DNA from: Macrostomum hystrix
Lineage: Eukaryota > Animalia > Platyhelminthes
Length of the DNA stretch: 64,000 bases
Direction of reading: 5' to 3'
NCBI GenBank assembly: GCA_950097015.1
Contig: CATNEN010000041.1
Coordinates: forward strand, 3,162,001-3,226,000
The first letter of the stretch is position 1. The number at the start of each line of letters is the position of its first letter. The position numbers were made by a program, and so were the translations under genes. Below the pieces are notes generated by a model. The model searched no databases. It saw nothing but the letters and a program-made list of their open reading frames with translations, and had not been told where the DNA came from. Positions 9,121 through 63,879 of the stretch are shown one piece after another.

Positions 9121-10045
9121 GCGGCCTGACAGCCCAATCGACTGGGGCTTCAGCATTCGGGAGTGCAGCATTCAGGAATTTATATTCCACCGCGCATTGT
9201 AAAGCAGCGAGGAGGAAGCGAACCGCCAGCAGTGCAATGCTGCAGACCAATTAGGCAAGGAAGAAGCTCTTGGAGCCTGCCACGGCCTTGAACTGAGACA
9301 AATTATCATCAGCTTATGCCTCGCAAAGTTGCCAAACACTGGCTGCACTCTCTGCGGAAGCGGGCAGCTGTTTTACCTGGGGATCGAACCTTGACAGCAC
9401 CCTCTTACCCCACGGCACCCCAGACCAGGAAGCCCGGTTCCATTGCAGCAGGATAATTCGCGCAAATGTCAGCGAGCCGCAGGATGGGCAGCGCATCCAA
9501 CAGTTGCGGCACTGAGGAGAGGCGGGGCTGCTGCCAGGGTGGAGAAAGCACAGAGTGGCTGGTGATGAACGAGGCTGCAATCTCGTGGGCTGGTCAAATA
9601 ATCCCTTCTGGGGTAATAGTCCCTTCCCTCCTAACGGGAGAGGTGCGGGCTGATCTCGGGAACAATGCGGACTGGCCTTTGCACTGCTGCCGCTGTCTGT
9701 CCGGGCTGTCCTGGCCCAGCTCCCGCCCGCCTCCCTGGCGCGGCTCTGCAGTGCTTGGCTTGACAAAGTCGATCTATTTCTCAGCGGACAATATCTTGCG
9801 GGTTCCGCAACTATCGACCTGAACACGATCGACGAGTCAGTTCGCCCTGTGGCTCTGAGGCTCTATCGGGCGAGGACATCGGGTTAGGGGAACCGAATGC
9901 ATTTTAGCTATTGCCGCAACAGATTATTATTTCATATATTATCTATATGCTATACCGGTATAGTCCAAGAGTGCCAATGAACAGCGCTAATTAGGACGGC
10001 AGGACGAGCTGAGAGCATCGGCGAATGAAAACAACACCGACTCAC

Positions 10046-10867
10046 CCTTGCCAGAGTGGAGGTCTGCGGCTCCTCCAGTATGTTCCAGACGTGTCGCTTA
10101 AACTCGCCGTAGCGCCCGCTGCCGAAGTTGTGCTCCACGTTGCGCTGGTTCCATTTGACGGCCTCCATGTCCTTGCGGATCTCCTCCTCAGCCGTCTCCT
10201 TCTTCTGGTGGTACTTGTGCTGGCAGCAGAGGTCGAAGTAGTCCTCGGAGATGCCCCAGTACTTGAGCTCGGCGGCGTACGAGATCACGCAGGCGTCGTC
10301 GCTCATGTGCAGCTTGCCGGTGCGGTAGAAGTTCAGCACCGGGTGAAAAAACTTCGGGTGCCGGTCGAAGAAGAATTCATTGTCGCAGGCGTTGTAGTCA
10401 TCGCAGAGTTCCAGGATCTCCGCGGGGCTTCCGGCCAGCCGCAGCTGGCCCAGACGCGTCTTCGGCAGACGGTCCAGCGTCCGCCACAGAATCTCGTGCC
10501 GCTCTCCGCCAACGTTCAAAATTACTCGGCGAGGACCGACGCCAGCGTCGCTCGAACAGCGATGCTGCAGGTGCTGCTGCTGTGCTGTGAAATGCTGGGC
10601 CTGCAGCTCCTTGGAAGCTTCATCACCGATGCTGGCTTCCGCCGTCTGCTGCTGCTCCTGCATGACTGGCAGCCGCAATGGATCAGCTGCTGCTGCTGAT
10701 TCTGAAGTCTGCGTCTTCTGCTGATGCAGTTTCTGCTTGCGTTGCCTGCATTGGCTGCTCCTGGAGGCTTCGCTGCAAGAAGCGGCGGCTGCTTCGGCTG
10801 CTGCGTTGGCTCGGGCTGCAGCTGCGGTGGAGGAGTTTGTACAGCCCCCGCTGCGGGCAGCGAACAT
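10046..10867 (-). CDS. Shab: Kv2/Shab channel, exon 1 (Ala/Gln-rich N-terminus + T1/BTB domain)
   Basis: T1 domain RRVILNVGGERHE...EFFFDRHP...ELKYWGI...CCQHKY. Donor AGG|GTGAGT at 10046/10045, phase 0, joins exon 2 as QTSTLAR|[11 protein letters not shown]. Joined CDS is 709 aa. ATG at 10867 is the first in-frame Met; an upstream exon cannot be excluded. Confidence 0.92.
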
Positions 10868-35685: not shown

Positions 35686-36705
35686 ATGAATCAAGCACAA
35701 GATGCAATCGCTATGTTGGCAGAAGAGTTGAGAAATCGACTCGAGATTGGACCTATGCGTCATGTAAAAATTCAAAAGTTCACACCTGGACAAGATATCA
35801 GAATTTGGCTTACCGCCTTTGATCAACGCTGTGAAGCAGAAGGTATTGAGGAAGACAATAGAAAGCAAGAATTGTTGGCCAATTTAGACCTAACCACAGC
35901 TTTTGCCGCAGTGCAAAGATTGAATCTTCCAGATGATTTGGAATATGAAGAATTTAAAGACAGATTAATTGAACGATTCGGAAGAATCGGCAGTTCCGCC
36001 GAATTCCGTGAAGAATTCAGAGGACGAATGCAGAGTAAGAATGAGTCAGTTGAAACTTTCTCTGATTGTCTGATTGAATTAGCTGCTAGAGCTTTTCCAA
36101 ACATGAATATGGAGCAGAAGGAAGAAGAGATCGTGGAACAGTTTATTAAAGGAGTAAGAATATCCGCTGAAACGCGAGAGAAATTGATCTTTGCTCAGCC
36201 TGCTAACCTACAGGAGGCCAGACGAATGTTAAGACGGATGGAAGCTGCATGGAATATGACTCATCGGAACATCGGCATGAGAATGGCCAAAGGCGAGGAA
36301 GAACTTGAACGACGACGAAGCGAGCAAGATCGACTGGAGGAAGTCATCAGACAGCAGCAAGCTCAGCTCGAATTGCAGAAGAAGACACTACAAGAACTGA
36401 TGGCCAACAAACAGCAACAACAGACTTATGCTCAGGCTGTAAACTCGTACCGGCCAAATAGTCAGCAACAACAGCAATACCAGCAGCGTCAGCCATATCA
36501 GCAGCCGCAATATCGGCAGCAGCAATTTCAGCGACCGACACAGCAGCAATACCCACAGCAACAGCAGCAGAGGCAGTGGCAGTCCCAGCAGCAGCAGGCG
36601 AGACCTCCACTAACTTGCTACAATTGCCGTAAGACAGGACACATCGCGAAACACTGCAGAGCTCCTCGGCAGAACCAGCCGCAGGCGCAGAATCAGGGAA
36701 ACTGA
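35686..36705 (+). CDS. gag: Gag with CCHC zinc knuckle
   Basis: 339-aa ORF just after the PBS; Gln-rich linker; CYNCRKTGHIAKHC. Confidence 0.93.
   Translation: MNQAQDAIAMLAEELRNRLEIGPMRHVKIQKFTPGQDIRIWLTAFDQRCEAEGIEEDNRKQELLANLDLTTAFAAVQRLNLPDDLEYEEFKDRLIERFGRIGSSAEFREEFRGRMQSKNESVETFSDCLIELAARAFPNMNMEQKEEEIVEQFIKGVRISAETREKLIFAQPANLQEARRMLRRMEAAWNMTHRNIGMRMAKGEEELERRRSEQDRLEEVIRQQQAQLELQKKTLQELMANKQQQQTYAQAVNSYRPNSQQQQQYQQRQPYQQPQYRQQQFQRPTQQQYPQQQQQRQWQSQQQQARPPLTCYNCRKTGHIAKHCRAPRQNQPQAQNQGN
36696..36702 (+). promoter_or_regulatory. -1 ribosomal frameshift slippery site G GGA AAC
   Basis: X XXY YYZ heptamer directly before the gag stop. The pol frame is -1 relative to gag and open from 36702 to the protease. 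Confidence 0.85.
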
Positions 36706-39700
36706 TTCGTGAGGGACGAGATGCGAGGCCACGCCCCTCTAAAAGTACAGCCAGCGAAACTCAGGCCTCAATTAAACTGGCAAGTAATAAGCAGAAACCT
36801 AATGTAAATGATAATGTAAACTCTGAGAAAGTACAAACTGAATCTAGTGCAGAAAAGAAAGGTCGTGAAGCAGTTGTGAAAGGCGAGATTCGGAATCAGA
36901 AAGTAACATTTTTGCTAGACACTGGTGCAGGACATAACTTCCTAGGAAAGAACTCTTGGAAGAAGATGGTTAAAGACAATGAAATTGAGCCAAGCAATCG
37001 AAGAGTGACCACGTTTGATGGAGCAACTGTAAAGATTGCAGGAGAAGTAACTGTTAAAGTAAAATTTGGAGAAGTTGAAATCGAGACCGAATTTCTCTTG
37101 TGCCATCACGACTGTGACGATATCCTAGGGATGGAATTTTTCCAAGATTATTGCAATAATATTAACTTTGCCACAGGCATGCTTGTACTAAGAAGTAATA
37201 TGTGCATTCCAATTCAATTTACTAAATTGCCAGTTCGTGTTTGTCGAGTATATTGCTCTGAAAAAGTAATTGTGCCAGCTAATAGTGCACTTAGAATTTC
37301 TGTTAAATTGCCGAAAAATGCCGAAGCCAATTATGGCACGCCAATGACTATTGAACCAATCAGAGGACAGATCAACACCAAGAAAGGTACTTTGGATGTA
37401 ATACCGACTCTAGTAACCATGAGTAATGGAATAGGAGTCATTGAAGTTATTAATAAGCAGAGTGACGACATACCGCTATCGAGATCTACGATTATCGGAT
37501 TTGCCAAGCCATTGCAAGCTAAAGACTTAACTTACTATGCCGAGCAAGATCAAGCAGAAAAAGTCAAACCCAATGGACATGTGAAGACTGCGAGATGCGA
37601 GCAATTAAGCCAAGAAGATTGGATCACTGAGATCAATCTAGGAGAAAATCTGACTAATAGACAGAAAGACCAAGTTATCGAGCTGGTAAAAGAACACAGA
37701 GAAGCATTCTCTCAGACCAGTCAAGAAATGGGTCTGACCCACTTGGTGACCCACGAAATCTCATTGAAAGACACCACACCGGTTCGGATTCCTACCAGAC
37801 GGATTCCACCGCATTTGCAAAAACAAGTGGATGACCAATTAGACGACATGCTCGCTAAGAACTTGATAAGACCAAGCTATAGTACTTATTCAACACCATT
37901 GGTCATCGTACCTAAGAAGGATGGAACTATCAGAATTGTCAGTGATTTTCGAGTTCTAAACTCAAGAGTGGATTACTATCCATATCCTCTACCGAACATC
38001 CAGGAGACATTTTCACATTTAACCGGAAGCCAGTACTTCAGCAGCCTTGACCTTAATTCGGGTTATTGGCAAGTTCCTATAAAGGAGGAACACAAGTACA
38101 TGACAGCATTTTCTACGTTAACGAGAGGCCAATTTGAATATCAAGTCATGGCGCAAGGACTGTCTAATGCGCCCGGTACTTTTCAAAGACTGATGAACTT
38201 AGTTTTAACTGGCATTCAGCACAAGTTTGCCATGTCTTACATTGATGACATAGTGACTTACTCTAAGACTTTTGAAGAACATCTCAGTCATCTAAAGGAA
38301 GTATTTCAAAGATTGATAACAGCTGGATTGAAACTAAGACCTAAAAAGTGCAACTTGTTTCAGCAAGAATTAAAGTACTTAGGACATGTAGTCGGAGTCG
38401 ATGGAATAAGAACAGACCCGGCGAAGATCGAGGCTATTAAAACATGGCCAGTGCCTAAAGATGTTAAAGAATTAAGAAGCTTCCTTGGATTGTGCAATTA
38501 CTATTGCCGATTTGTTAAGAATTATGCTGATGCCGCACACCCATTATTTCAATTAACTAAGAAGGGAGTGCAGAATTTCAAGGAAAAATGGACTAAAGTA
38601 CATACTGAGTCATTTGAACTATTAAAACAAAAGCTAATGTCCACTGAAGTGCTTGCCTATCCAGAGTTTTCTGAGAATGAAAAAGTACGAATGGTCCTAG
38701 ATGTCGATGCTAGCGACAATAGAATCGGCGCCTGTCTTGGACAGATACAGTCCGACGGCACTGAAAGGCCGATTGCGTACTTTAGCCGAGCTATGAAAGA
38801 TTCTGAAAAGAGATATCCGATCACCAGAAAAGAGTTGTTAGCATTGGTTGATGGGATGAAGCACTTTCGATTTTATCTCATTGGCAAACGATTCTTAGCC
38901 CGCACTGATCACAAGGCGATCCTATGGCTTCTACGCCAGACTGAAGCGCAAGGAATTCTTGGTCGGTGGATCGAGCGGCTAAGCGAGTTCCAGTATGACA
39001 TCGAGCATCGTTCGGGCAGCAAGCACAGCAACGCTGACAGTCTATCCCGACGACCTGCTGAGACTGACAATACAAAGCCAACACAAATTGACCGAAAAAT
39101 GGACTCTGAATTAGAATTGAAAGGAAGTGAACCGAAGGTGAGCTTACCAGACAGCCAGGTAGGACTGATTCAGCCACCTGAAGAAATCGAGGAAACCGAC
39201 ACCGATGTCCGCGATGATCGTGTAATTGAGAAGGAGATGCCAGCAAAACAGTTGACTAGCAGAAGCTCACTGAAGCATCAAAGCTGTCAGACTGATCTGG
39301 AGATTCTCAAAGAGCAGAAAGTACAGGAAGATGACAAAGATGATGAAGATGATGATGATGTATTCGAAGATGCGAGAGATTACGTTGAAGATGAAGAAGT
39401 TGAAGAAGAGAGATGTCGGAAACTTCTTACTGATTATCTCGAGGTTCCACTCAAGAAGGAGCAGTTGGTGCAAGCCCAGCAAGAAGACTCCTCAGTGAGA
39501 ACACTGATAAATTGGAAGAAGAGTGCAGTAGAGAAACCGACAGGAGACAAATTGTCAGAAGAATTGAAGAAAATGTTAAAGTACTACGAACAGATGAAGT
39601 TCGAAGATGAGTTGTTGACGATTCAAGAAGAAGGAATCAGAAAAATTGTGTTGCCAAAGAGCATTGAAAAAGCAGTGTTTAGAGAACTGCATGACAGCCC

Positions 39701-41255
39701 ATTGGCAGGTCACCTAGGCCGTGATAAAACCACGCAGAGAGTGCGTGAACGGTTTTGGAGACCCGGACTAGTCACTGCAATTGAGAAGTACGTTTCAGAG
39801 TGTATAACGTGTTTAGAGAGTAAAGCGGGACAGCGTATCCCAGCACCTGTGCAGAATTTTCCGATTTGTGAGCCGTTTGAGCGCCTCCATATAGATTTTA
39901 TTGGACCTGTGTCCAAGGACAGCAGAAGAGGGCACAAGTATGTACTGACAATAGTCGATAGTACAACTAGATTCCCATTCGCTTTTCCGACCAGGAACCA
40001 GAAATCAGATACTGTAATCAAGATATTACAAGAAAGAGTATTCGCAGAATACGGACAATGCAAATGGATCCATACTGATAATGGAAAGTCATTTACTAGC
40101 CGACAATTTCAAGCATTTTGTGAGCTGTATGGGATCAAGCACACGTGCACCACACCCTACCATGCTCAAAGTAACGGCTTAGTTGAACGATTTAATGGAC
40201 AAGTCAAATCGATAGTTACATGTCTGATTAACAAGGATCACTCTGATTGGGATCTCATGATTCCAGCCGCGCTCGTAGCAGTGCGAACGAGTATTAATCA
40301 ATCTACCGGATTTTCGCCTCATTATCTATTATTTGGGCGTGAAGCAACTTTGCCCATAGACAATATAGTCAAAAGACCGCACGAATTCGCTAACTATCCT
40401 AGTTATGTAAAAGACCATGCCGAAAGATTGGAGAAAGCTAGTAAAATTGTCAAACAGAAGCTAGAGAAGATTAATGAACAAAGAAAAGAAAAGGCCGAAG
40501 TTGCCAAGAAGCCAAAAGAAATTATTATTGGAGGAATTGTATTGTTAAATAATCCGCAGTTACATCAAGATGAGAGTCATAAATTTCACAGGAAAAAGCG
40601 AGCCGCGTACCGAGTACTTGCTCAGTTATCCGACACAGTTTATCGTGTTCAGAGAGAAATCGAAGGAGAAAGAGTAGGAGAGAAATTAATTGTGCATAGA
40701 AACAACATCACACCAGTGCCAAACACACAAATCACATTACAATCCGCAGAACAAACAAGGAAGGGAGATCACAAAATTAGTCACACCACACGGTCAAAAG
40801 TTAAGGGAGGTCAGGCCACCTCAAATAAAAATAAACAAAATGTAATTGTCATTAATGAAGAAGAAGACGAATCCGAAGAAGAAGACAGAATAAGATGGAG
40901 AGCTAATATGCCAAATGAAGAATCCGAAGACGAAAACTATGCAGAACAGGAAGCAATCCCTGACAATGAAAACGAAAGGCAAGAAGAAGCGAATGAGTCA
41001 GAACAAGAAGAAACAGACAGCGAAATGGACAAGACTGAAGAAATGAACATGAGTGACTCAGAGATTGAACATGAAGAAGAAAGAAATGTACATACAGAAG
41101 GAGCCCATGGCTATAATCTCAGACCACGAAATGACAGGACTGAACAATTGAACAGGGGAGAGCCTACCCCAGGAAGAGGAGTGTTACGTAACACCCAGCC
41201 AGTCACTCACGGCTTCGTGCCTCGGGAACGATACAGAAGATATCTACCCCAGTGA
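36702..41255 (+). CDS. pol: Pol polyprotein (protease, RT, RNase H, integrase)
   Basis: LLDTGA protease; YIDD RT; LDVDASD..RPIAYFSR RNase H; HDSPLAGH..C..C zinc domain and RLHIDFIG/TDNG/NGLVERFN DDE integrase. No stops or frameshifts. Confidence 0.96.
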   Translation: MIREGRDARPRPSKSTASETQASIKLASNKQKPNVNDNVNSEKVQTESSAEKKGREAVVKGEIRNQKVTFLLDTGAGHNFLGKNSWKKMVKDNEIEPSNRRVTTFDGATVKIAGEVTVKVKFGEVEIETEFLLCHHDCDDILGMEFFQDYCNNINFATGMLVLRSNMCIPIQFTKLPVRVCRVYCSEKVIVPANSALRISVKLPKNAEANYGTPMTIEPIRGQINTKKGTLDVIPTLVTMSNGIGVIEVINKQSDDIPLSRSTIIGFAKPLQAKDLTYYAEQDQAEKVKPNGHVKTARCEQLSQEDWITEINLGENLTNRQKDQVIELVKEHREAFSQTSQEMGLTHLVTHEISLKDTTPVRIPTRRIPPHLQKQVDDQLDDMLAKNLIRPSYSTYSTPLVIVPKKDGTIRIVSDFRVLNSRVDYYPYPLPNIQETFSHLTGSQYFSSLDLNSGYWQVPIKEEHKYMTAFSTLTRGQFEYQVMAQGLSNAPGTFQRLMNLVLTGIQHKFAMSYIDDIVTYSKTFEEHLSHLKEVFQRLITAGLKLRPKKCNLFQQELKYLGHVVGVDGIRTDPAKIEAIKTWPVPKDVKELRSFLGLCNYYCRFVKNYADAAHPLFQLTKKGVQNFKEKWTKVHTESFELLKQKLMSTEVLAYPEFSENEKVRMVLDVDASDNRIGACLGQIQSDGTERPIAYFSRAMKDSEKRYPITRKELLALVDGMKHFRFYLIGKRFLARTDHKAILWLLRQTEAQGILGRWIERLSEFQYDIEHRSGSKHSNADSLSRRPAETDNTKPTQIDRKMDSELELKGSEPKVSLPDSQVGLIQPPEEIEETDTDVRDDRVIEKEMPAKQLTSRSSLKHQSCQTDLEILKEQKVQEDDKDDEDDDDVFEDARDYVEDEEVEEERCRKLLTDYLEVPLKKEQLVQAQQEDSSVRTLINWKKSAVEKPTGDKLSEELKKMLKYYEQMKFEDELLTIQEEGIRKIVLPKSIEKAVFRELHDSPLAGHLGRDKTTQRVRERFWRPGLVTAIEKYVSECITCLESKAGQRIPAPVQNFPICEPFERLHIDFIGPVSKDSRRGHKYVLTIVDSTTRFPFAFPTRNQKSDTVIKILQERVFAEYGQCKWIHTDNGKSFTSRQFQAFCELYGIKHTCTTPYHAQSNGLVERFNGQVKSIVTCLINKDHSDWDLMIPAALVAVRTSINQSTGFSPHYLLFGREATLPIDNIVKRPHEFANYPSYVKDHAERLEKASKIVKQKLEKINEQRKEKAEVAKKPKEIIIGGIVLLNNPQLHQDESHKFHRKKRAAYRVLAQLSDTVYRVQREIEGERVGEKLIVHRNNITPVPNTQITLQSAEQTRKGDHKISHTTRSKVKGGQATSNKNKQNVIVINEEEDESEEEDRIRWRANMPNEESEDENYAEQEAIPDNENERQEEANESEQEETDSEMDKTEEMNMSDSEIEHEEERNVHTEGAHGYNLRPRNDRTEQLNRGEPTPGRGVLRNTQPVTHGFVPRERYRRYLPQ

Positions 41256-41663
41256 TTTCGAGAACAATAGAGAACAATGGGAGCTCAGTTGACACAGATT
41301 TGCGTTAAAGTCAATGTTAATTGATTAAGATTTAAAATGAGATAAACTGAAAAATCAAATAAAAAGTAATCTGAAAAAGATATTGGAAAAGTAAAAACAT
41401 CAATGTATTCGGGAGAATGAGATCTGTAAAAAGAATCCAAACATGAAAGTATAACTGTAAATGATAAAGTCGGAAATTGAAATTAAATGAGTGTGATATA
41501 TGACATGGCAGAGTAAGGCTGTCAAAAGTGGCCCTCAGATCCCTAGGGAGCCCGGACACATTGATGCGGTCCAGTTTTCGCTCTATATAATAAGACCACC
41601 TAAAGGCCCGCCAGAGAAGAATCTTAAGACAGTGCCAAAGTGTGAAAATTGCAAACCCAAAGA

Positions 41664-42467
41664 ATGGATAACAACCTAGACGACTTCCTACAAGAATTGT
41701 TGGACGGCGGAGATTTTGCTCAAGAAAATATGGAGACGGCGCAAGAAAATATGGAGACGGCGGCACCAGAGCGAGTAGCGACGCGCCCCAAGCTGCCAGT
41801 CGCTACTGCAATGGCCACGAAAAGACCGCGCACACCATCACCGGTAGCGGTTAAGCAGGCGAAAACGGCACAGCCAGCAGGGATGACAAGCAGCGGCCGC
41901 CTCAAATCGGTAATTTGTTTGAGCACGGCAGGACCTGTTCGGACAGCGACCGAGGCATCCCACAGGCGATATTCGGCTGGGCCGGCACTGCAGCAATTGC
42001 GGCCCGCACCGCTGGAAGCCAACGCTAGAAGGGAGCCGCAGCCGACGCAGGCCAAACCGCAGCCGACACAGGCCAAGCCGCAGCCGACACGGGCCAAGCC
42101 GCAGCCGATGCCTGTCGTGCCGCAGTCTACGCCGCCTGTGCCGCAGAAACAACCGACGCCAGCAGAAGAAGAAAGGGAGAAGATGGTTCACGACCTGACA
42201 GAATACATGGAGAAGGTGGCATTCCACACATACGAACTGTCATACCCGCAACGAACTCAGATATGGAAAAGTATGCTGGTACTGAAGAGTCTGCCGCAGC
42301 ATCAGGCCGTTACCGCACTTCAAGCCGTCGCCCACAATGTACATCAGAGCGCAGCAACCGGCGAGGCGACTCTACATCGGAAAGTGACTAACATGGAATT
42401 TAGATGGGCCTTCCGTCAAATCGGCTGGCCTTATTATCGAGTGTTACCCGCCCCATGCGCATTTTAA
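41664..42467 (+). CDS. Extra ORF3 of the gypsy element, 267 aa, unknown function (not env-like)
   Basis: Uninterrupted GC-rich ORF between pol and the PPT, ATG at 41664. Acidic N-terminus, Pro/Gln/Ala-rich middle, predicted helical C-terminal domain. TATATAA at ~41584 upstream. Confidence 0.6.
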   Translation: MDNNLDDFLQELLDGGDFAQENMETAQENMETAAPERVATRPKLPVATAMATKRPRTPSPVAVKQAKTAQPAGMTSSGRLKSVICLSTAGPVRTATEASHRRYSAGPALQQLRPAPLEANARREPQPTQAKPQPTQAKPQPTRAKPQPMPVVPQSTPPVPQKQPTPAEEEREKMVHDLTEYMEKVAFHTYELSYPQRTQIWKSMLVLKSLPQHQAVTALQAVAHNVHQSAATGEATLHRKVTNMEFRWAFRQIGWPYYRVLPAPCAF

Positions 42468-47002: not shown

Positions 47003-47220
47003 TGGGCCGTTCCGTTTTGCATGTCCACTGTTCCACATAGCGCGACAAAAGCAATAACTACATGTATCTATACAAATTAATAATTTTTCAATACTTTTAA
47101 TTCAAGTTACTCAGTAAATAGCACTTACTGAATAAACTTGTGCTTTTGTTAAATGCATTTTACATTTTCCTGCTGCACCTTTCAGCCTACAGTTAGCGGC
47201 TCGTGTGCATTTGTTAAACA

Positions 47221-50200
47221 ATGAGCCAGCATGAGCCAGATTCTCCAGCCAGATCTGCTGAGCAACAGCATCAGCCACGCAAATTTTACGAGCTACCAAG
47301 GCAAGACAGCCAGCAGTCAGCAACTGAAGAAGCCAATGACAAGGCCAGCTGTCACACGCTGCTGGATTATATCAACAGGTTAGCCAATGGCCATTGCCAG
47401 ATAAACTGTGTAGCTTTAAAGTACAATATATATTAGTGAGAGTCGAGGAGAGCGCTATGAGCGTTAGTCGCACTTCATTTTCGAATTCTCGAGTCGCTTA
47501 ATATATATATACCTGCTTTCCTATGCTGGCCAGGTCTGTCATCGGCTCCCATTTGCCTTTCAATGGTCCGTTCGGCCTGCGTCACGTGATCTACTGCGAC
47601 TACACGGCATCAGGTCGGTCGCTGAGCTTCATCGAGGACTACATCCGCGATGAGGTGCTGCCCCATTATGGCAACACGCACACCACTACTGGCGTGACTT
47701 CGCTCCAGACCACGATGTTCCGGCATGAGGCCAAGGACATTGTTAGAAACTGCTGCCGTGCCAGCGACCTTGATGCTGTTATCTTTACAGGCAGCGGCTG
47801 CACCGGTGCTGTGCACAAACTCATACACAACCTGCAGCTCAAGGTGCCTCCAGTAAGTGGTCGGGCTGGATTTTCTAAATCTTAAAAAGCATTTTGCATC
47901 GCATTTAATTGTTCCGTGCATGAGTGCGTCATCAGGTATTCCATTGCTCTAATCCTCCCACACTGCAGATCGTATTCGTGGGCCCTTATGAGCACCACTC
48001 GAACCTGCTGCCATGGCAGGAGGTGGCCGCCCAGGTCATCCGTGTGGAGCCAACTTCAGAAGGCGCTGTTAACATGGAGCAGCTTGAGCAGCTTCTCAAG
48101 GAGGTGGCCGCTGAACCCGGTGCAAGTCCGGACCGCCGCATCATCGGCTGCTTTGCCGCAGCCTCCAACATCACCGGCGTGCTCAGCGACACGGTCCGCC
48201 TGGCCTGCTTGCTGCACAGCTACGGCGCCCTTGCCTTCTTCGACTACGCCGCCGCTGCACCCTACATCCCCATCGACATGAACCCCGTGGAGAATTCCGG
48301 ACTGTCCTACAAGGATGCTGTGTACTTCTCCTTCCACAAGTTCGTCGGCGGTGTCCAGACACCCGGTGCGCTGATTGTGAAGCGAGCACTGCTCAGCAGT
48401 CCCGTGCCTGACGGTGTGGGCGGTGGCACCGTGTTCTTCGTCCGGCGCGAGCGTCGCATTTTCCTTGACGATGCCGAGAATCGGGAGGAGGGCGGCACGC
48501 CAGCCATCGTGGAGAGCATCCGCGCCGGCCTGGTCTTGCAGCTAAAGCGGGCTGTCGGGCCCGAGCTGCTGGCCAAGCGGGAGCAGCAGCTCTGCGACCT
48601 GGCGTGGCGAGAGCTGCAGGGAGCTGAGGGTATTGTGGTGCTAGGCGGTCGCGAGCTGCCACGCCTGCCGCTGTTCAGCTTCGTAGTGCGGCATCCGGCA
48701 ACTGGGTTGCTACTGCATCACATGGTGAGCTGGGTTGCACGCCTACTGGGAATTGCGTGCCGTCCATGTGAGCAGTTGCAGAGAATGAACTCCGGTCTGT
48801 TTACTTCTATCCTGTCCGAAAATGCGATTGGCAAATTGGCCGGCTATTTGAGCCGCTAGCTGCACCTGTTACCCCTGCATTTTCGGCTTTAGCAAAGCTT
48901 TTTACCTGCCTAAAGAATTGAAATAGAAAGGGATTTAAAATGCACTTCCACTCCATTGGGATTCGAGATGCACTTCCACTCCATTGGGATTCGAGATGTA
49001 CTTCCACTCCATTGGGATTCGAGATGCACTTCCACTCCATTGGGATTCGAGATGCATTTCCAATCCATTGGGATTCGAGATGCACTTCCACTCCATTGGG
49101 ATTCGAGATGCACTTCCAATCCATTGGGATTCGAGATGCATTTCCAATCCATTGGGATTCTAGATGCACTTCCACTCCATTGGGATTCGAGATGCACTTC
49201 CAATCCATTGGGATTCGAGATGCACTTCCACTCCATTGGGATTCGAGATGCACTTCCACTTTATTGGGATTCGAGATGCATTTCCACACCATTGGGATTA
49301 GAAAGTTCTCAATCTCAAGTCGTCCGTTCCACCAATCATCCGCTGCCCTCAGTTCGTCGCTACACTGCTGAACGACCTGTTCGGCATCCAGGCCCGCGGT
49401 GGCTGCGCTTGCGCCGGTCCCTACGCGATGGACCTGCTGGGCATTGAAGAGCCGCTGGCTGAGCGCCTCGAAGCTGCTCTGGTTGGTCGCAGCGGCATGG
49501 GGCAGTTCTTGCGCAGCAAGTACTTTGACTATCCGCACCGGGAACTCCTGCGACCCGGCTTCGTGCGCATCAATCTTCCCTTCTTCATGCCCGACCAGGA
49601 GGCGGTCTTTGTTTTGCGCTGCCTACGTTGGGTTGGCGAGCACGGCTGGAAACTTCTGCCGCTGTACCGTGTCAACCCGGAAACCGCAGAATGGCGCGCC
49701 ATCGGTTTCGACCCGTTCCCCGAGCGGCACTGGCTCAGCCGGGTGTCCTACACCAGCGGCGCCATGAACTACCCGGCCTCCGGGGCCGGCGGGGGCTGTG
49801 GTCCGGGCCGGCAGCGCCGACAGTCATCCTCAAGGTTTTTGTCTGAAGCTTTGTTTCATTTGCGACTTATGATTGATTTGCGGCCTTTCGGTTATGTTCG
49901 AGGCACAGTCCAGTGAAAGAATTTCACTTCACTGGTGCAACTGTCTCAGTGCCTCAATGGAGGCTCGCTTTTAACATTTTTGTATATAGAGGTGCCCTTG
50001 TATAGTATATACAAGGTGATGAGTACTGGACTCCAAGCTTCACCTTCGCCACTGTCGCAGGTCGCACGACTTCGCCCAACTCATGGCCGAGGCGGACGAA
50101 CTAATCCGCCGCTCCGTCCCGCATGGGGGCAGCCGGCGCCACCCGGATGCCACGCAAATGTTTGACGATGAATCTGGCCGCCTGCGCTGGTTCCTCCTGC

Positions 50201-52311
50201 CGTGTGAGGCCGAGGCCGCATGCGCCGGCAACTGCCTGCCCGCGGCCGCAGCCTCACCTGTGCAGCCTGGCCGCCTGCTTCCAGTGTTCCCTGCGACTGG
50301 TGCTCCCGACTCCGTTGAGCAAACTTCTCCGGCACTGCCAACGCCTACGCCACCCTCGTCTCCTAAAGTTCCCGTCTGCGGCCTCCGCAACCGCCGGCAG
50401 CAGCCGCGGAGCCCGGAAAAGCAGCCTCAGCCGCAGCAGGCTAAAAGGCGGAAGCCGCAGCTGAGCCAGCAGCAGCTGCTAGAGAAGCGGCGCCGCAAGC
50501 TGTGCCGGCCCGGCACATTGTGGCGCTGCCCGCCTCGCGCCATCTTCCGGCCCTTCCTGGAGGCCATGGACGAGTTCAACATGATTCGCGATGGCGACCG
50601 CGTGCTGATCTGCTTGTCTGGTGGCAAAGACTCACTCAGCCTGCTGCACGCGCTGCATCAGTACCAGGCCTACACTGATCGCACCCCGGGTCCCCGCTTC
50701 CAGCTCGCCGCGTGCACCGTGGACCCAATCAGCAACTCGTACGACCCATCGCCACTAATTGGGTACCTGGAACGCCTGGGCGTTACCTACTATTTTGAGC
50801 GCCAACCAATCATGGAGGAGGCGGCAAAGTAAGCCCTATCTGGTAGCGATTATCGCTGATTGGATCGGATGTTCACCCTTTATTCATGGCTAGGCCAGGA
50901 CCAACCCATATTCAGGGCTAGGCCAGGACCAACCCGATATTCAGGGCTAGTCCAGGACCAACCCGATATTCAGGGCTAGGCCAGAACCAGTCCTATATTC
51001 AGGGCTAGGCCAGGACCAACCCGATATTCAGGGCTAGGCCAGGACCAACCCGATATTCAGGGCTAGGCCAGGACCAAACCGATATTCAGGTCTAGGCCAG
51101 GACCAAACCGATATTCAGGGCTAGGCCAGGACCAACCCTTATTCAGGCTAGGCCAGGACCAGTCCTATATTCAGGGCTAGGCCAGGACCAACCCTCCATA
51201 ACCTCGGTTCTTGGTGGCAAGTGCCGAGCTTCCCTTCATTGTCCTTTTTGTCCAGCCTGTTCGTTTTAAATCTTGTAAGTATTTGGTACTCTTTAGATTA
51301 TTATTCTTCTTCTTCTTATTATTATTATTATTATTATTATTCTTCTTCTTCTTCTATCCGTGAAAGAGTGACGGAAACCATTTTTATCCACCTGTCCGCA
51401 TTCAGTGATGTGCACCACAAAGGTTAAACTTTGTTCCATAGTTTTAGCATGAGTCTGGGGCCTCCGGCACTCATCATGATCTTGCATCGGGTGAGCTGCC
51501 AAGTTTTGAGCTTTAGTATCTTGTTTAAGGAAGCTCTCAAACTGTGGCTGGATAAATTTCTGTATTTCCCGTCTGTATTTCCTAACTATGAGCATGGCGT
51601 CAATCCCATACAGAATCAGCACTGCTGTTTGTGTAGAGCTCTGCTTTTTGTCTTGATTAAAAGCTTCTTAGGAAAAAGTTTAGAACCCACTAAGGTCTCA
51701 GCGGTGTCCTACCCTGCTGTCCTTCCTGTAGGGTGGACTGCGACTCCATCTGCGCCTACTGCGCCCGCATGAAGCGCGGCCGCCTGTACGCCACGTCCAG
51801 GCTCCACGGCTACAACGTTCTGGCGATGGGCCAGCACCTGGATGACCTGGCAGAGAGCTTCCTCATGTCCGCCTTCCACAATGGCTGCTTGCGCACTATG
51901 AAGGCCAATTACACCGTGGAAACCGGTGACCTCCGCGTCATTCGGCCCTTCGTATACGTGCGCGAGAGCAGCACCAGGGAGTTCGCGGACCTGGCCGGCC
52001 TGCCCGTCATACCGGACAACTGTCCGGCCTGCTTCCGGACACCCACAGAGCGATTCCGCGTCAAGCAGCTGCTGGCCGAGCAGGAGTGCCTGTTCCCCGA
52101 CCTGTACTCCAGCCTGCGGGCCTGCATGCGGCCGCTGTTCGGCCTGCCCGGCCGGGGCGCCGCTCTCGCTGCGGCTGCCGGCTCCCCGTCCTCTGAGCCT
52201 CGGAGCCTGCGCAGCCTGCTGCCCAGCCTGGCCTCCGTACTGATGTTTCTGCTGACCCTGGCCCTGGCTGCCTACGTCTACCGAGTACAGCAGCCGGCCA
52301 GGGCTGTGTGA
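47221..52311 (+). CDS. Fusion protein: class-V PLP aminotransferase/cysteine-desulfurase-like + TtcA-type tRNA 2-thiocytidine synthetase-like domain, with C-terminal TM helix (~1020 aa)
   Basis: Exons 47221-47378, 47534-47852, 47969-48724, 49353-49834, 50061-50828 and 51732-52311 are all phase-compatible (3063 nt). N-half: YCDYTASG, GNTHT, FDYAAAAPY, SFHKFVGG (PLP Lys), RGGCACAG. C-half: LSGGKDS PP-loop, CAYCARMKRG, GQHLDD, VIRPF, CPAC. The exon 4 donor (GTTTTT) is weak. Confidence 0.88.
48940..49297. repeat. 28-bp minisatellite, ~12.5 copies (intron 3)
   Basis: Unit gatgcacttcca(c/a)tccattgggattcga. Confidence 0.93.
50886..51193. repeat. 29-bp minisatellite, ~10.5 copies (intron 5)
   Basis: Unit agggctaggccaggaccaacccgatattc. 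Confidence 0.92.
51297..51355. repeat. Compound (TAT)n/(TCT)n microsatellite
   Basis: Alternating attattatt and tcttcttct blocks. Confidence 0.9.
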
Positions 52312-53379
52312 GCACGTGCTCACTGCATTGTTGGTTTGTGTGGCACGGTTGTTGGTACCCTAGTTCCACACGCAAGCAATCCCGTTGTCTGGAATGAACT
52401 TTAAAAAACTTTTGTTGTAAGTCTTGTGCGCTTTTACACACTTCAATTAGTTGGCTTGCCGGTATTCGTACTCCACTGACAGAACAATTCCCGCTTCTTG
52501 TATTCAAATAAGCTTCTTCAGTTATATCACTGCACGTCACTACCTGTCCGTCTTTTTGTTTTGTGACGTGTCTAGTTTTTAGATTTCGCCTGCTGAATAT
52601 GAATTTCGACATCGCGAGTGTTTTTAATAGACGTAGTCTGCTTTATGTTTTTCATGAGTTTGTTGTTTGTCTTCACTGAATTACCGTGACACCTGATATC
52701 TGTTTTCCTAGACACTCGCTTTACACGGCTTTATGGTCCCGTCAGCATGTATGCACCTCAATATCTGTAACCGGCTGTCTAGCACACTCCTATTTAGCAA
52801 TCAGCTGGGAAAATTTATGAGGTCTCTGAGGTAAAAGTGGTAAAGGGAATTTATCACTTTATTTTCCGTGGCAAAACTCGGACTGTTGCTTTCTGTGCTT
52901 TCTTCTTCCTCATGCCCACATGCGAATCTTGCTGTCGGCCCTTATGTTTAGTCACAGAGAGCAGTCAGCGGTCGGATGCTTCTTGTTCCTTCTGTCAGCT
53001 TTGAGCCATTCCATTCCTGGCCCTTGGCTTTCGATTTAAGAATGAACCTGTGTCAGCTACATGTTATAATTGTCGATTTTAGACGATATGTTTATTTTTA
53101 GAGCATCGGCGATGGTATTTGTTTGTGCTTCAAAAAGTACACCCACGCGAAAGCTGTGCGCCAAGCAAATTTTGCTCGATTGGCTTGATTTATTGAACTC
53201 ATTGAATTCGGCGTTCGGTGTGCCTTTCTGTATTGTTCCTTTTTTTACATCCGGTATCTAAACAGGAAATTATCTTAGTATTATGTAGCGCCTGTGTTTC
53301 TCAGGTCGACTGCTCGCCAAGGCCGTTGTGTTTGAAGCCGTCTCACCCTCCTCCCCCGGCCCTGCTCAGGGTTGAGGAT

Positions 53380-62000: not shown

Positions 62001-63879
62001 TCACCAGGTCTGGCTACGGTTGGAGCGAAGTCTGTCAGAGCCCAGATTTACGCAGTGCTCAAAGGCGTTGTAGCTGGTGACGGAGCAGCCGTTGCGCAGC
62101 CTCAGCAGCTCCAGACAAGTTAGCCAAGGACATCCGGTGGCGATGCTGGACAGGGCAGCCGGGGTCAGCTTGCTACAGTCGGACAGGCGGAGACGCCGCA
62201 GACCCCTGGCAACCGGACTGGCGCAGAGGTCGGCGACCGCGTCATCGGTGAGACTGGAGGCGCTGCAGATTTTGACCTGAAGCTCGTGCAGGTCGGGCGG
62301 AGAGCTTACCGTGCTCTGCAGGCTTCGCAGGTTCGCCCAGGCCTGGCGGGTCAGACGGCTACAGTCCTTGAGGCGCAGACTGCGTAGGCGGGGCAGCTGG
62401 CTGAGCAAGAAGGGAAGAAGGTCGTCATCGCAGTCATTCAAGACCAGATGGGTCAGCTCTGGGGGATGTTCAAACGCCATGATTGAGTAAAAGGTCAAGT
62501 GATATACAGGACATGATATGGCATAGAAATTATGTCGCAGAGAATCGCACTCACCCCGGCAGCCGGCCAGGCCGTTTCGCAGTCCCCGAATGCCGCAGTC
62601 TCCCGCACTCCAGAACATCAGCATAAGTCGCTTAAGCCCAGAGGGCAGCGGCGCTTCCAGCTCCTCTTCTGTCGGGTCTTCAGTGCAATGCAGTCGCAGA
62701 GATTCCAGGTGTTGTGGCAGGCGGGCAGCAACGATGCGGTACTCAGAACCATCTAGCAGGTGACCATCGTACAGGTCAAGACATTGCAGCATGCGGCAAT
62801 TATCTACTAGTGCGCTAATGCCGCTGGGACTCATTTCACAGCACTCGCAGAATAATTTCAGAGTACGGAAGCCGCGGCCTGCTTCAGCCAGTACAGAAGC
62901 CAACTCGTCAGTGGCGTCTGCGCAGGACAGACTCAGCTCAGTTAGGCGAGGAAGCCGGCGCAGCAGCTGCCGAAGATCTACGGAAGTGGCGGCAAAGTGC
63001 ACTCAAATACTAATCATAAATTAAATAATGACAGCCGAAAACGATTTCTGAAAACCGACTGCTCTAGAATTAGACTGTGTTCTGAAAACAGACTGCTCTA
63101 GAATGCTCACCGGACTCAGTCAGTTCACTAAAGCCGTCCAAAGTGAGTGTGCTCAGCTCCGGGCAATCTGGCAGCACGGGAATTAGCGACGCCAGCAGAG
63201 AGCCGTCTCGCAGGCTCAGCGATGTCAAACGGCTGACCAGAGAAGCCAGCTGGGAGATGGCCAGAGGGTCAGGAGGAAAGGCTTCCTCTTCGTCAAAAGA
63301 AAGCTTCAGGTGCGAGAGTTTTGGGCAGCCGGCCTGCAGCTGCGCAAGCGAGTCGGCAACTAGCACACTTCTATCGCAGTTTTTCAGCTGCAGTGTCTGC
63401 AGCTGGTGGCACCAGCGGCCCAGAATCCACAGCAGATTTTCTGCATTTGATGAGCCGATATCCCAGCAGATGGTCAGGCTCTGGAGGCTGGGAGACTCGG
63501 CTAGCAGCGGAGCAATGAACTGCCAGTCACTGGCAACCGAGAAGCGAAGCTCACGCAGTGCTCCGGATAGCCAGCTGGTCAGGTGGCGCTGTAGTTTCGC
63601 GGTGATGACAGAATCTCTTCCCCCGATGCGGAGCCGGTTCCACAGAATTGGCTGCAAAGCCACCCTATGCCAGCGCCGGCTCAGCTGAGCGCAGCGGCCC
63701 CGACTGCTCTGGCTCAGCATTGACAGGATGCGCGTGACCAGCTCCATGGGCAGCTGCTCGATTTGACACTGACTGTCGGCCTTCAGCGATTCAGTTAAAA
63801 TCTCTGGTTGCATTATTGAGCAGCTCAGCACAGCAGGCTGAACTCTTACATCTTCTAGATTGATCTCAATTGCGCCCAT
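62001..63879 (-). CDS. F-box/leucine-rich-repeat protein (FBXL-like, 557 aa)
   Basis: F-box IEQLPMELVTRILSMLS..RCAQLSRRWHRVALQPILW followed by cysteine-containing LRRs (LRSLRLKDCSRLT, LRRLRLSDCSKLT). Exons 63879-63111, 63001-62555 and 62458-62001, all phase 1 (1674 nt). Confidence 0.88.

Follow-up and report, generated by a model that had tools for sequence, protein, structure and literature searches.

A Macrostomum hystrix gene encodes a SufS-like desulfurase unit fused to a TtcA-like unit, a putative one-protein route from cysteine to thiolated tRNA

The window analysed here is a stretch of 64,000 nucleotides from the flatworm Macrostomum hystrix (assembly GCA_950097015.1, contig CATNEN010000041.1, positions 3,162,001 to 3,226,000 of the forward strand), and all positions given below are those of the window. 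A gene at 47221-52311 on the plus strand encodes a protein in which a desulfurase-like unit is followed by a unit resembling the tRNA-thiolating enzyme TtcA. The two halves are present on one mRNA and are joined inside a single exon. The gene probably encodes a bifunctional cysteine-to-tRNA thiolation enzyme that belongs to a pan-eukaryotic family. Gene architecture and transcription support this interpretation, and the product of the enzyme would be 2-thiocytidine at position 32 of tRNA (s2C32). 2-Thiocytidine has long been regarded as a modification of bacteria and archaea. The family to which the flatworm gene belongs has already been described, there as a correlation, in a preprint on the mollusc Aplysia (10.64898/2026.09.27.754811). 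The additions of the present analysis are the fusion within an exon, the assignment of the N-terminal half to the SufS type together with a predicted catalytic cysteine, the distribution of the family across eukaryotes, and a predicted tail anchor.

One transcript encodes both halves of the protein

The interval 47221-52311 consists of GC-rich open reading frames (ORFs) on the plus strand that are separated by short, AT-richer gaps. Six exons joined at GT..AG sites produce a single open frame with a coding sequence of 3063 nt and a protein of 1020 amino acids (aa). A first-pass annotation, made from the sequence alone, had described an intron-containing frame with the motifs SFHKF and RGGCACAG, a Pro/Gln linker, SGGKDS, CAYC, and CPAC, and the spliced sequence has all of these elements in a single frame.

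Transcript contigs were built from three runs of a 2020 study and one run of a second study. Four small public runs of the 2020 study contained about 0.6 of the words sampled from the stretch, which equals the exon share. The contigs of three samples, designated X3, X4, and X5, skip exactly the five predicted introns with GT..AG ends at each of them, the passage from exon 3 to exon 4 being represented in X4 by matching loose ends. Splicing of transcripts is the best explanation for GT-AG joints that lack the introns in three samples. In X4 and X5, a single contig (2638 and 2746 nt, respectively) connects exon 4 with exons 5 and 6 and with the 3' untranslated region (UTR), and a separate contig contains the 5' UTR and exons 1-3. 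Two separate transcripts, which the first-pass annotation had named as the outcome that would overturn the fusion, were looked for, but exons 4-6 lie on single contigs. The same annotation had called the donor site of exon 4 weak. Its sequence, AAG|GTTTTT, is indeed non-consensus, but the site is used in all three runs: the joint 49834|50061 between exons 4 and 5 is present in X3, X4, and X5. Retention of intron 4 was not found in the contigs of these samples, where the depth of the intron is 0. Moreover, the fusion is independent of any splice, because exon 5 alone encodes the motif LRWFxLP at the end of the desulfurase-like unit, the linker, and the PP-loop of the TtcA-like unit. Bacterial stand-alone homologues of the N-terminal half (538-543 aa) align to residues 65-621 of the model and stop there, at LRWFxLP.

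The 5' UTR covers at least 47185-47220, with contigs that start at 47185 in X3 and at 47193 in X4 and X5. No other ATG precedes that at 47221 in the transcript contigs. Exon 1 (47221-47378) provides the start codon and a polar, acidic N-terminus of 52 residues, and its joint to exon 2 (47378|47534) was recovered in X3, X4, and X5. The N-terminus of the fusion protein does not have the look of a mitochondrial presequence, because it contains five Lys or Arg residues and nine Asp or Glu residues. Exon 2 (47534-47852) encodes the N-terminal part of the class-V domain that binds pyridoxal phosphate (PLP; YCDYTASGRSL...NTHT), which corresponds to positions 1-83 of Pfam Aminotran_5 and is also supported by the family alignment; the joint 47852|47969 to the next exon is seen in X3, X4, and X5. 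The core of the PLP domain is encoded by exon 3 (47969-48724), with EHHSN at residues 167-171 and SFHKF at residues 280-284, the latter including the PLP lysine K283 (48338-48340). Intron 3 (48725-49352) is skipped in the contigs of X3 and X5 and flanked by the matching loose ends in X4. Exon 4 (49353-49834) encodes the active-site loop RGGCACAGP, the small C-terminal domain, and the start of a family-specific extension; the residues RGGCACAG are aa 426-433, with C429 encoded at 49404-49406 and C431 at 49410-49412.

Intron 4 (49835-50060) is 226 nt long and has a GT..AG joint in X3, X4, and X5. The fusion exon, exon 5 (50061-50828), encodes the end of the desulfurase-like unit with LRWFLLP (aa 613-619, 50182-50202), the linker (aa 622-734, about 50209-50550), and the N-terminal half of the TtcA domain with the PP-loop SGGKDS (aa 758-763, 50617-50634). 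The linker is composed of 19% Pro, 12% Ala, 12% Arg, and 11% Gln, and includes a basic KRRK...KRRRK stretch. The spliced intron 5 (50829-51731) is followed by exon 6 (51732-52311), which encodes the C-terminal half of the TtcA domain with CAYC (aa 835-838, 51751-51762) and CPAC (aa 925-928, 52021-52032), a predicted tail-anchor helix (L990-Y1011, 52216-52281), and the stop codon (52309-52311). The 3' UTR occupies 52312-52800, and contigs X4-11, X5-14, and X3-7 extend at least 300-400 nt past 52800. All of these features are on the plus strand.

The N-terminal half resembles SufS-type desulfurases

In family scans, exons 2-3 are recognized as Aminotran_5, and the nearest models are SufS and CsdA. 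For exon 3, the E values are 1.6e-26 with Pfam Aminotran_5 and 1.7e-23 with the SufS subfamily model. A profile of the N-terminal half was built from 14 family members and searched against solved structures. Its best matches are of the SufS type, with 8d8s (E 3e-35) followed by 5j8q, 5xt5, and 1c0n (E. coli CsdB/SufS). Structures of CsdA match the profile less well, and chains of the NifS/IscS type are marginal (PDB 4ixo, E 1e-4). The NifS-type model TIGR03403 reaches 15 bits on the N-terminal half, so that the closest similarity is not to the type I desulfurases (IscS/NFS1 and NifS), which are marked by a long flexible Cys loop.

The residues of the SufS active site have counterparts in the flatworm protein. 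K283 falls on the column of the SufS PLP lysine, H168 and H169 of the EHHxN motif (aa 167-171) fall on the SufS His-His columns, and C431 is positioned in the column of the SufS catalytic cysteine. The SufS loop R-A-G-H-H-C-A-Q-P aligns with R-G-G-C-A-C-A-G-P of the flatworm protein, and the family profile GIQARGGCsCAGP is aligned to SufS GVAVRAGHHCAQP. In SufS-type enzymes the persulfide forms on the loop cysteine. These alignments show the N-terminal half (residues ~55-621) as a predicted PLP enzyme of the SufS/CsdA type with K283, H168/H169, and C431 at its active site.

The shared features, a fold-type I class-V PLP domain, the PLP lysine, EHHxN, and a loop of the form R-x-G-x-x-C-A-x-P, are accompanied by several differences. 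The flatworm loop reads GGCAC where SufS has GHHC, and thus contains a second invariant cysteine two residues upstream of the catalytic position. The N-half family has an extension of ~110 aa beyond the SufS-like core, which ends in LRWFxLP, and no partner of the SufE/SufU type is known. The curated cut-offs of the known subfamilies are not reached by exon 3 alone, which scores 83 bits against the 475 required by TIGR01979 for SufS, and 41 bits against 494-607 for CsdA. Bacterial members of the N-half family, in which both C429 and C431 are invariant, are ~540 aa long and are named just 'aminotransferase class V-fold PLP-dependent enzyme'. The family was defined by a word-index protein search, the length window of which precludes fused relatives for single-exon queries. 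The N-terminal half is treated here, on the basis of its sequence, as a separate and hitherto uncharacterised sister family of the type II (SufS/CsdA) desulfurases.

The assignment differs from that of the Aplysia preprint, where the N-terminal half was compared with IscS, the catalytic cysteine 'was not identified', and the Cys-x-Cys pair was offered as candidates (10.64898/2026.09.27.754811). Alignment with SufS rather than IscS settles C431 as the cysteine of the Cys-x-Cys pair at the predicted catalytic position.

The C-terminal half is TtcA-like

The NCBIfam model of TtcA, NF007972, matches exon 5 with an E value of 2.9e-16 (59.6 bits) and exon 6 with 3.6e-29 (102 bits). In a BLASTP comparison with E. 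coli TtcA, residues 735-961 are 32% identical over 231 aa (E 9e-38). The PP-loop SGGKDS is the same in both proteins. C835, C838, and C928 align with C122, C125, and C222 of E. coli TtcA, which are essential and bind a [4Fe-4S] cluster (Bouvier et al., PMC4081106), and C925 aligns with the non-essential C219. The cluster cysteines of Pyrococcus TtuA, the structure of which is solved, align with CAYC and the first cysteine of CPAC in a comparison that covers the catalytic core only. These similarities show the C-terminal half (residues ~708-965) as a putative TtcA-like unit that has an ATP-binding PP-loop as well as counterparts of all three cluster-binding cysteines of E. coli TtcA.

The score summed over exons 5 and 6, ~162 bits, is below the equivalog cut-off of NF007972 (272 bits). 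The unit is labelled TtcA-like because TtcA is by far its best family, yet the score lies under that cut-off. Intact orthologues score 183-210 bits with TtcA, but 45-68 bits with TilS-N and TtuA, and 30-40 bits with NcsA. For the flatworm gene, NcsA gives 17 bits and TtuA 20.5 bits, and the best match is thus not to the CTU1/Ncs6/TtuA group. The division into a desulfurase-like and a TtcA-type unit that the first-pass annotation proposed is borne out by the retained catalytic residues and by the lead of TtcA over TtuA, NcsA, and TilS. Two further searches were uninformative: the part of the TtcA domain encoded by exon 5 alone had zero matches in the PDB, and a look-alike search of the ESM Atlas with exon 6 returned generic short PP-loop clusters only, which do not bear on fusions.

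E. coli TtcA (b1344) and the flatworm domain have in common SGGKDS, the three cysteines of the [4Fe-4S] site, a basic N-terminal helix, and RRG after the first CxxC. The bacterial enzyme is a free-standing protein of 311 aa that obtains sulfur from a separate IscS, whereas the flatworm domain is the C-terminal third of a protein of 1020 aa. CTU1/Ncs6, NcsA, and TtuA share the PP-loop fold and the three-cysteine cluster site with the C-terminal half. Their matches are weak, with 17-21 bits for the flatworm and 30-59 bits for the orthologues, and their zinc-finger segments are unmatched. The extra zinc fingers of CTU1/Ncs6 had been noted as absent at first pass, and in agreement with this no zinc-finger match of the CTU1/TtuA type appeared. 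The sulfur donor of CTU1/Ncs6, NcsA, and TtuA is a ubiquitin-like thiocarboxylate, and these enzymes have no fused desulfurase.

The fusion is distributed across eukaryotes

An exhaustive search with exon 6 identified 238 cluster representatives at E <= 1e-30. The best 150 of the 238 representatives are 51-73% identical in the TtcA part; 85 of these 150 also carry the N-terminal half, and the remainder are mostly short fragments from contigs of ~1-3 kb. Named animal members include those of an echinoderm, a coral, shrimps, octopuses, a bed bug, a sea spider, a rotifer, the nematode Caenorhabditis brenneri, and the liver fluke Opisthorchis. Parasitic flukes and tapeworms with the gene include Opisthorchis and Hydatigera. 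Named members outside animals include those of a choanoflagellate, an ichthyosporean, an amoebozoan, Chromera, a dinoflagellate, and the stramenopile Cafeteria. Some of the protist records are transcriptome assemblies, in which contamination is possible; those of Chromera and Cafeteria are genome-based gene models. Pfam finds Aminotran_5 followed by ATP_bind_3 in eight relatives from protists, a nematode, and a fluke. The mention in the first-pass annotation of similar fusions among invertebrate predictions is correct as far as the animal members go, but the family also extends to protists of several supergroups. In UniRef and NCBI, orthologues bear automated names such as 'tRNA 2-thiocytidine biosynthesis protein TtcA' (Patiria and Cimex) and 'tRNA-cytidine(32) 2-sulfurtransferase' (Nymphon). 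Humans are not known to have a homologue of TtcA.

Ten 'TtcA-only' representatives (~370-860 aa) were considered as candidate stand-alone eukaryotic TtcAs. They come from metagenome contigs of 1.4-14 kb, mostly shorter than 3.3 kb. Most of the ten are read as fragments and not as a stand-alone class. One cluster with a short representative includes a Cafeteria protein of 1364 aa that is fused according to Pfam.

Conservation was counted in a MAFFT alignment of 86 fused proteins, for some columns in the filled rows only. The column of the PLP lysine contains K in 66 of 68 filled rows, and the columns of C429 and C431 contain Cys in 82 of 82. W615 of the LRWFxLP motif and SGGKDS are each kept in 85 of the 86 relatives, and all 86 have C835, C838, C925, and C928. 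The linker between LRWFxLP and SGGKDS has a median length of 180 aa and a range of 67-492; it measures 139 aa in the flatworm protein.

In a tree of the N-terminal halves, the branch that separates 19 sampled bacterial proteins from all eukaryotic ones has a support of 100. The tree fits a putative single origin of the fusion, but falls short of proof because the tree lacks a root and its bacterial proteins were selected for being best hits. The flatworm sequence is sister to a tapeworm protein modelled as stand-alone (P0014, Hydatigera taeniaeformis, 500 aa) with a support of 97. Another stand-alone model, the partial P0013 of Diploptera punctata, groups with the N-terminal half of a Cimex-like fused protein (support 100). 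Both P0014 and P0013 are probably truncated models of fused genes. A separate clade of Amphiura and Nematostella sequences may represent a true stand-alone paralogue of the N-terminal half.

A third domain was observed in a dinoflagellate orthologue (P0164, Biecheleria cincta, EukProt), in which residues 1035-1132 form a C-terminal thioredoxin. The presence of this domain hints that a disulfide may be reduced in each catalytic cycle.

A predicted tail anchor in the flatworm protein

The maximum of the Kyte-Doolittle hydrophobicity in a window of 19 residues is 2.24 at residue 990 (L990-A1008, then nine residues), whereas values elsewhere are at most 1.36. The last 31 residues are predicted to be a typical tail anchor. 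The helix would probably tether the flatworm enzyme to the membrane of an organelle, facing the cytosol. The tail is regarded as a lineage feature because only a minority of the relatives have one.

Repeats and neighbouring genes in the window

Two introns of the fusion gene contain minisatellites (Tandem Repeats Finder). That of intron 3 has a unit of 28 nt in 12.9 copies (48940-49299), and that of intron 5 a unit of 29 nt in 10.9 copies (50881-51194); the match among units is 90-93% within both. An (ATT/CTT)n run is located at 51297-51355, also within intron 5.

An AT-rich block just upstream of the fusion gene contains a long terminal repeat (LTR) retroelement of the Ty3/gypsy type (35686-42467) with long ORFs for gag (339 aa, with a zinc knuckle) and pol (1459 aa, with protease, reverse transcriptase, RNase H, and integrase). 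About 130 nt upstream of the 5' UTR, the segment 47003-47056 has a word depth above that of the fusion gene and is bordered by loose contig ends on both sides; it looks like an exon of another gene. A K+ channel of the Shab (Kv2) type is encoded on the minus strand at 201-1571 and 9950-10867, with a pore-domain exon and a T1/BTB_2 exon that are ~8 kb apart. The best named relative of the Shab-type channel exon, with 77% identity, is from Macrostomum lignano, in keeping with a macrostomid-like flatworm as the source of the DNA. Adjacent ORFs on the minus strand at 62001-63879 have an F-box match and weak, sub-threshold matches to leucine-rich repeats (LRRs), and are probably exons of a single F-box/LRR gene.

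Comparison with the Aplysia fusion and other sulfur-transfer systems

The bioRxiv preprint, dated 28 September 2026, reports s2C32 in tRNA-Lys-UUU of Aplysia and calls it the first eukaryotic s2C (10.64898/2026.09.27.754811). The search of the Aplysia genome with E. coli TtcA in that study had the fused gene as its match. This 'IscS-TtcA' gene of Aplysia californica, LOC101861551, encodes 1177 aa and has RNA-seq support, and the fusion was found in 28 mollusc species; cleavage was raised as a possibility (10.64898/2026.09.27.754811). The statement of the first-pass annotation that such fusions lack characterisation is therefore outdated. No further account of the fusion, beyond the Aplysia preprint, was found in the literature searched.

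LOC101861551 has the same order of elements as the flatworm gene, with a PLP domain of the CsdA/COG0520 type, a variable linker, and a TtcA-like domain on one mRNA. It also has the PLP lysine, Cys-x-Cys, SGGKDS, and C...CxxC...CPAC. The flatworm gene shares the defining property of the family, the two domains in this order in a single polypeptide and a single transcript. The flatworm protein is shorter (1020 versus 1177 aa) and has a shorter linker, CAYC in place of the mollusc CSFC, and additionally the C-terminal hydrophobic tail. The Octopus orthologue P0138 is 51% identical to the flatworm protein in the N-terminal half and 60% in the TtcA half. Orthology of the flatworm and Aplysia proteins is suggested by way of Octopus, other named members, and the tree of N-terminal halves.

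Chimeras of desulfurases with rhodanese, and those of the ABA3/MOCOS type, follow a like logic of a class-V desulfurase joined to a sulfur-receiving domain (10.1101/2020.03.25.008375). In these chimeras the acceptor is a rhodanese or MOSC domain, for the molybdenum cofactor or sulfurtransferases, whereas the flatworm acceptor would be of an ATP-dependent, RNA-modifying type.

Proposed mechanism and alternatives

In the proposed mechanism, the N-terminal half would draw sulfur from L-cysteine to form a persulfide on C431. More speculatively, C429 could aid the release or relay of the sulfur by forming a C429-C431 disulfide, which a thioredoxin-type reductant would reopen. Within a probably dimeric protein, the sulfur would be passed to the iron of the cluster that is left free by its ligands C835, C838, and C928. 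The PP-loop would adenylate C2 of cytidine 32 in selected cytosolic tRNAs, and the cluster-bound sulfide would displace AMP to produce 2-thiocytidine. The cluster itself would be supplied by the cellular Fe-S assembly machinery. E. coli TtcA requires the [4Fe-4S] cluster, ATP, and dithiothreitol (DTT) in vitro, and receives sulfur from cysteine and a desulfurase (PMC4081106). By analogy, this DTT requirement and the thioredoxin domain of P0164 would fit a reductive step. The relay had been called self-contained at first pass, with donor and inserter in one chain, which goes too far. The enzyme would not be fully self-contained, because its Fe-S cluster is installed by other machinery, and the reductant would likewise come from elsewhere.

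Several points weigh against this interpretation. Activity, product, and cofactor are predicted from sequence for the flatworm protein and all orthologues, and the link between s2C32 and the fusion gene in Aplysia is correlative. Cysteine as the substrate of the N-terminal half is an analogy, because the scores lie far below the SufS and CsdA cut-offs. Similarly, the target position or base could differ because the TtcA half is below the equivalog cut-off. Near two bacterial stand-alone homologues of the N-terminal half, at four loci that represent two distinct contexts, there is no PP-loop/TtcA gene, and thus these contexts provide no operon support for a functional link. The runs X3-X5 carry no record as RNA, and their contigs leave room for additional, shorter isoforms or for a protein that is cut afterwards. 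Most relatives lack the tail anchor.

It is unlikely, yet deserves weight, that the fusion is real and makes a product other than s2C32, through thiolation at a different position or base of tRNA, or insertion of sulfur or selenium into a different RNA or a small molecule. The 32% identity to E. coli TtcA and the score under the equivalog cut-off leave room for this alternative. PP-loop/[4Fe-4S] enzymes with an equal three-cysteine site produce 2-thiouridine at position 54 (s2U54; TtuA) and position 34 (s2U34; NcsA), and structure entries of the SufS type also bear the name selenocysteine lyase. However, orthologues score much higher with TtcA than with NcsA, TtuA, or TilS-N (183-210 bits versus 30-68), and s2C32 has been mapped in an animal that possesses the fusion gene, namely Aplysia (10.64898/2026.09.27.754811).

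Rather improbable is the alternative that the halves exchange no sulfur. The linker would be cleaved or the N-terminal half employed elsewhere, the TtcA half would be fed by the mitochondrial NFS1 route, as for cytosolic s2U34, and the fusion would serve co-regulation. Such an arrangement would suit a linker that is long, variable, and of low complexity (67-492 aa around the median of 180), the cleavage raised in the preprint (10.64898/2026.09.27.754811), and the existence of stand-alone bacterial and animal paralogues of the N-terminal half with no TtcA partner nearby. Nevertheless, co-expression alone hardly explains why the fusion and the catalytic residues of both halves are kept over animals and several protist supergroups. 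Furthermore, E. coli TtcA is active in vitro with cysteine and a desulfurase alone as the source of sulfur (PMC4081106).

It is highly improbable that two adjacent genes, one desulfurase-like and one TtcA-like, were misjoined across the non-consensus exon 4 donor AAG|GTTTTT, even though an ATG at 50083 opens an ORF of 249 aa and could be a TtcA-only start: the joint 49834|50061 occurs with zero intron depth in the contigs of three runs, single contigs cover exons 4-6, exon 5 contains, in this order, the conserved end of the desulfurase-like unit and the PP-loop, and at least 85 representatives from numerous phyla have the identical two-domain order. Contamination or a recent bacterial transfer was rejected in view of the five spliceosomal introns, the animal gene neighbours (the Shab channel, the F-box/LRR gene, and the gypsy-type retroelement), and the eukaryote-wide orthologues.

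The bifunctional thiolation enzyme may also be viewed within a wider, tentative proposal, which we consider possible but doubtful. It supposes a single fusion before the main eukaryotic supergroups diverged, a cytosolic, sulfur-mobilising route that is dedicated to s2C32 and independent of NFS1, and a Cys-x-Cys pair that releases sulfide through an internal disulfide reset by thioredoxin. Eukaryotic s2C32 would then have been overlooked because yeast and mammals lost the gene. The release of sulfide by Cys-x-Cys, if true, would extend desulfurase chemistry by a new variant. The flatworm gene is a clean, transcript-supported member of the family in which the fusion is fixed at the level of an exon. 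Whether a single eukaryotic protein brings sulfur from cysteine into tRNA can be tested directly in a flatworm amenable to RNA interference, in Caenorhabditis, as C. brenneri has the gene, and in vitro.

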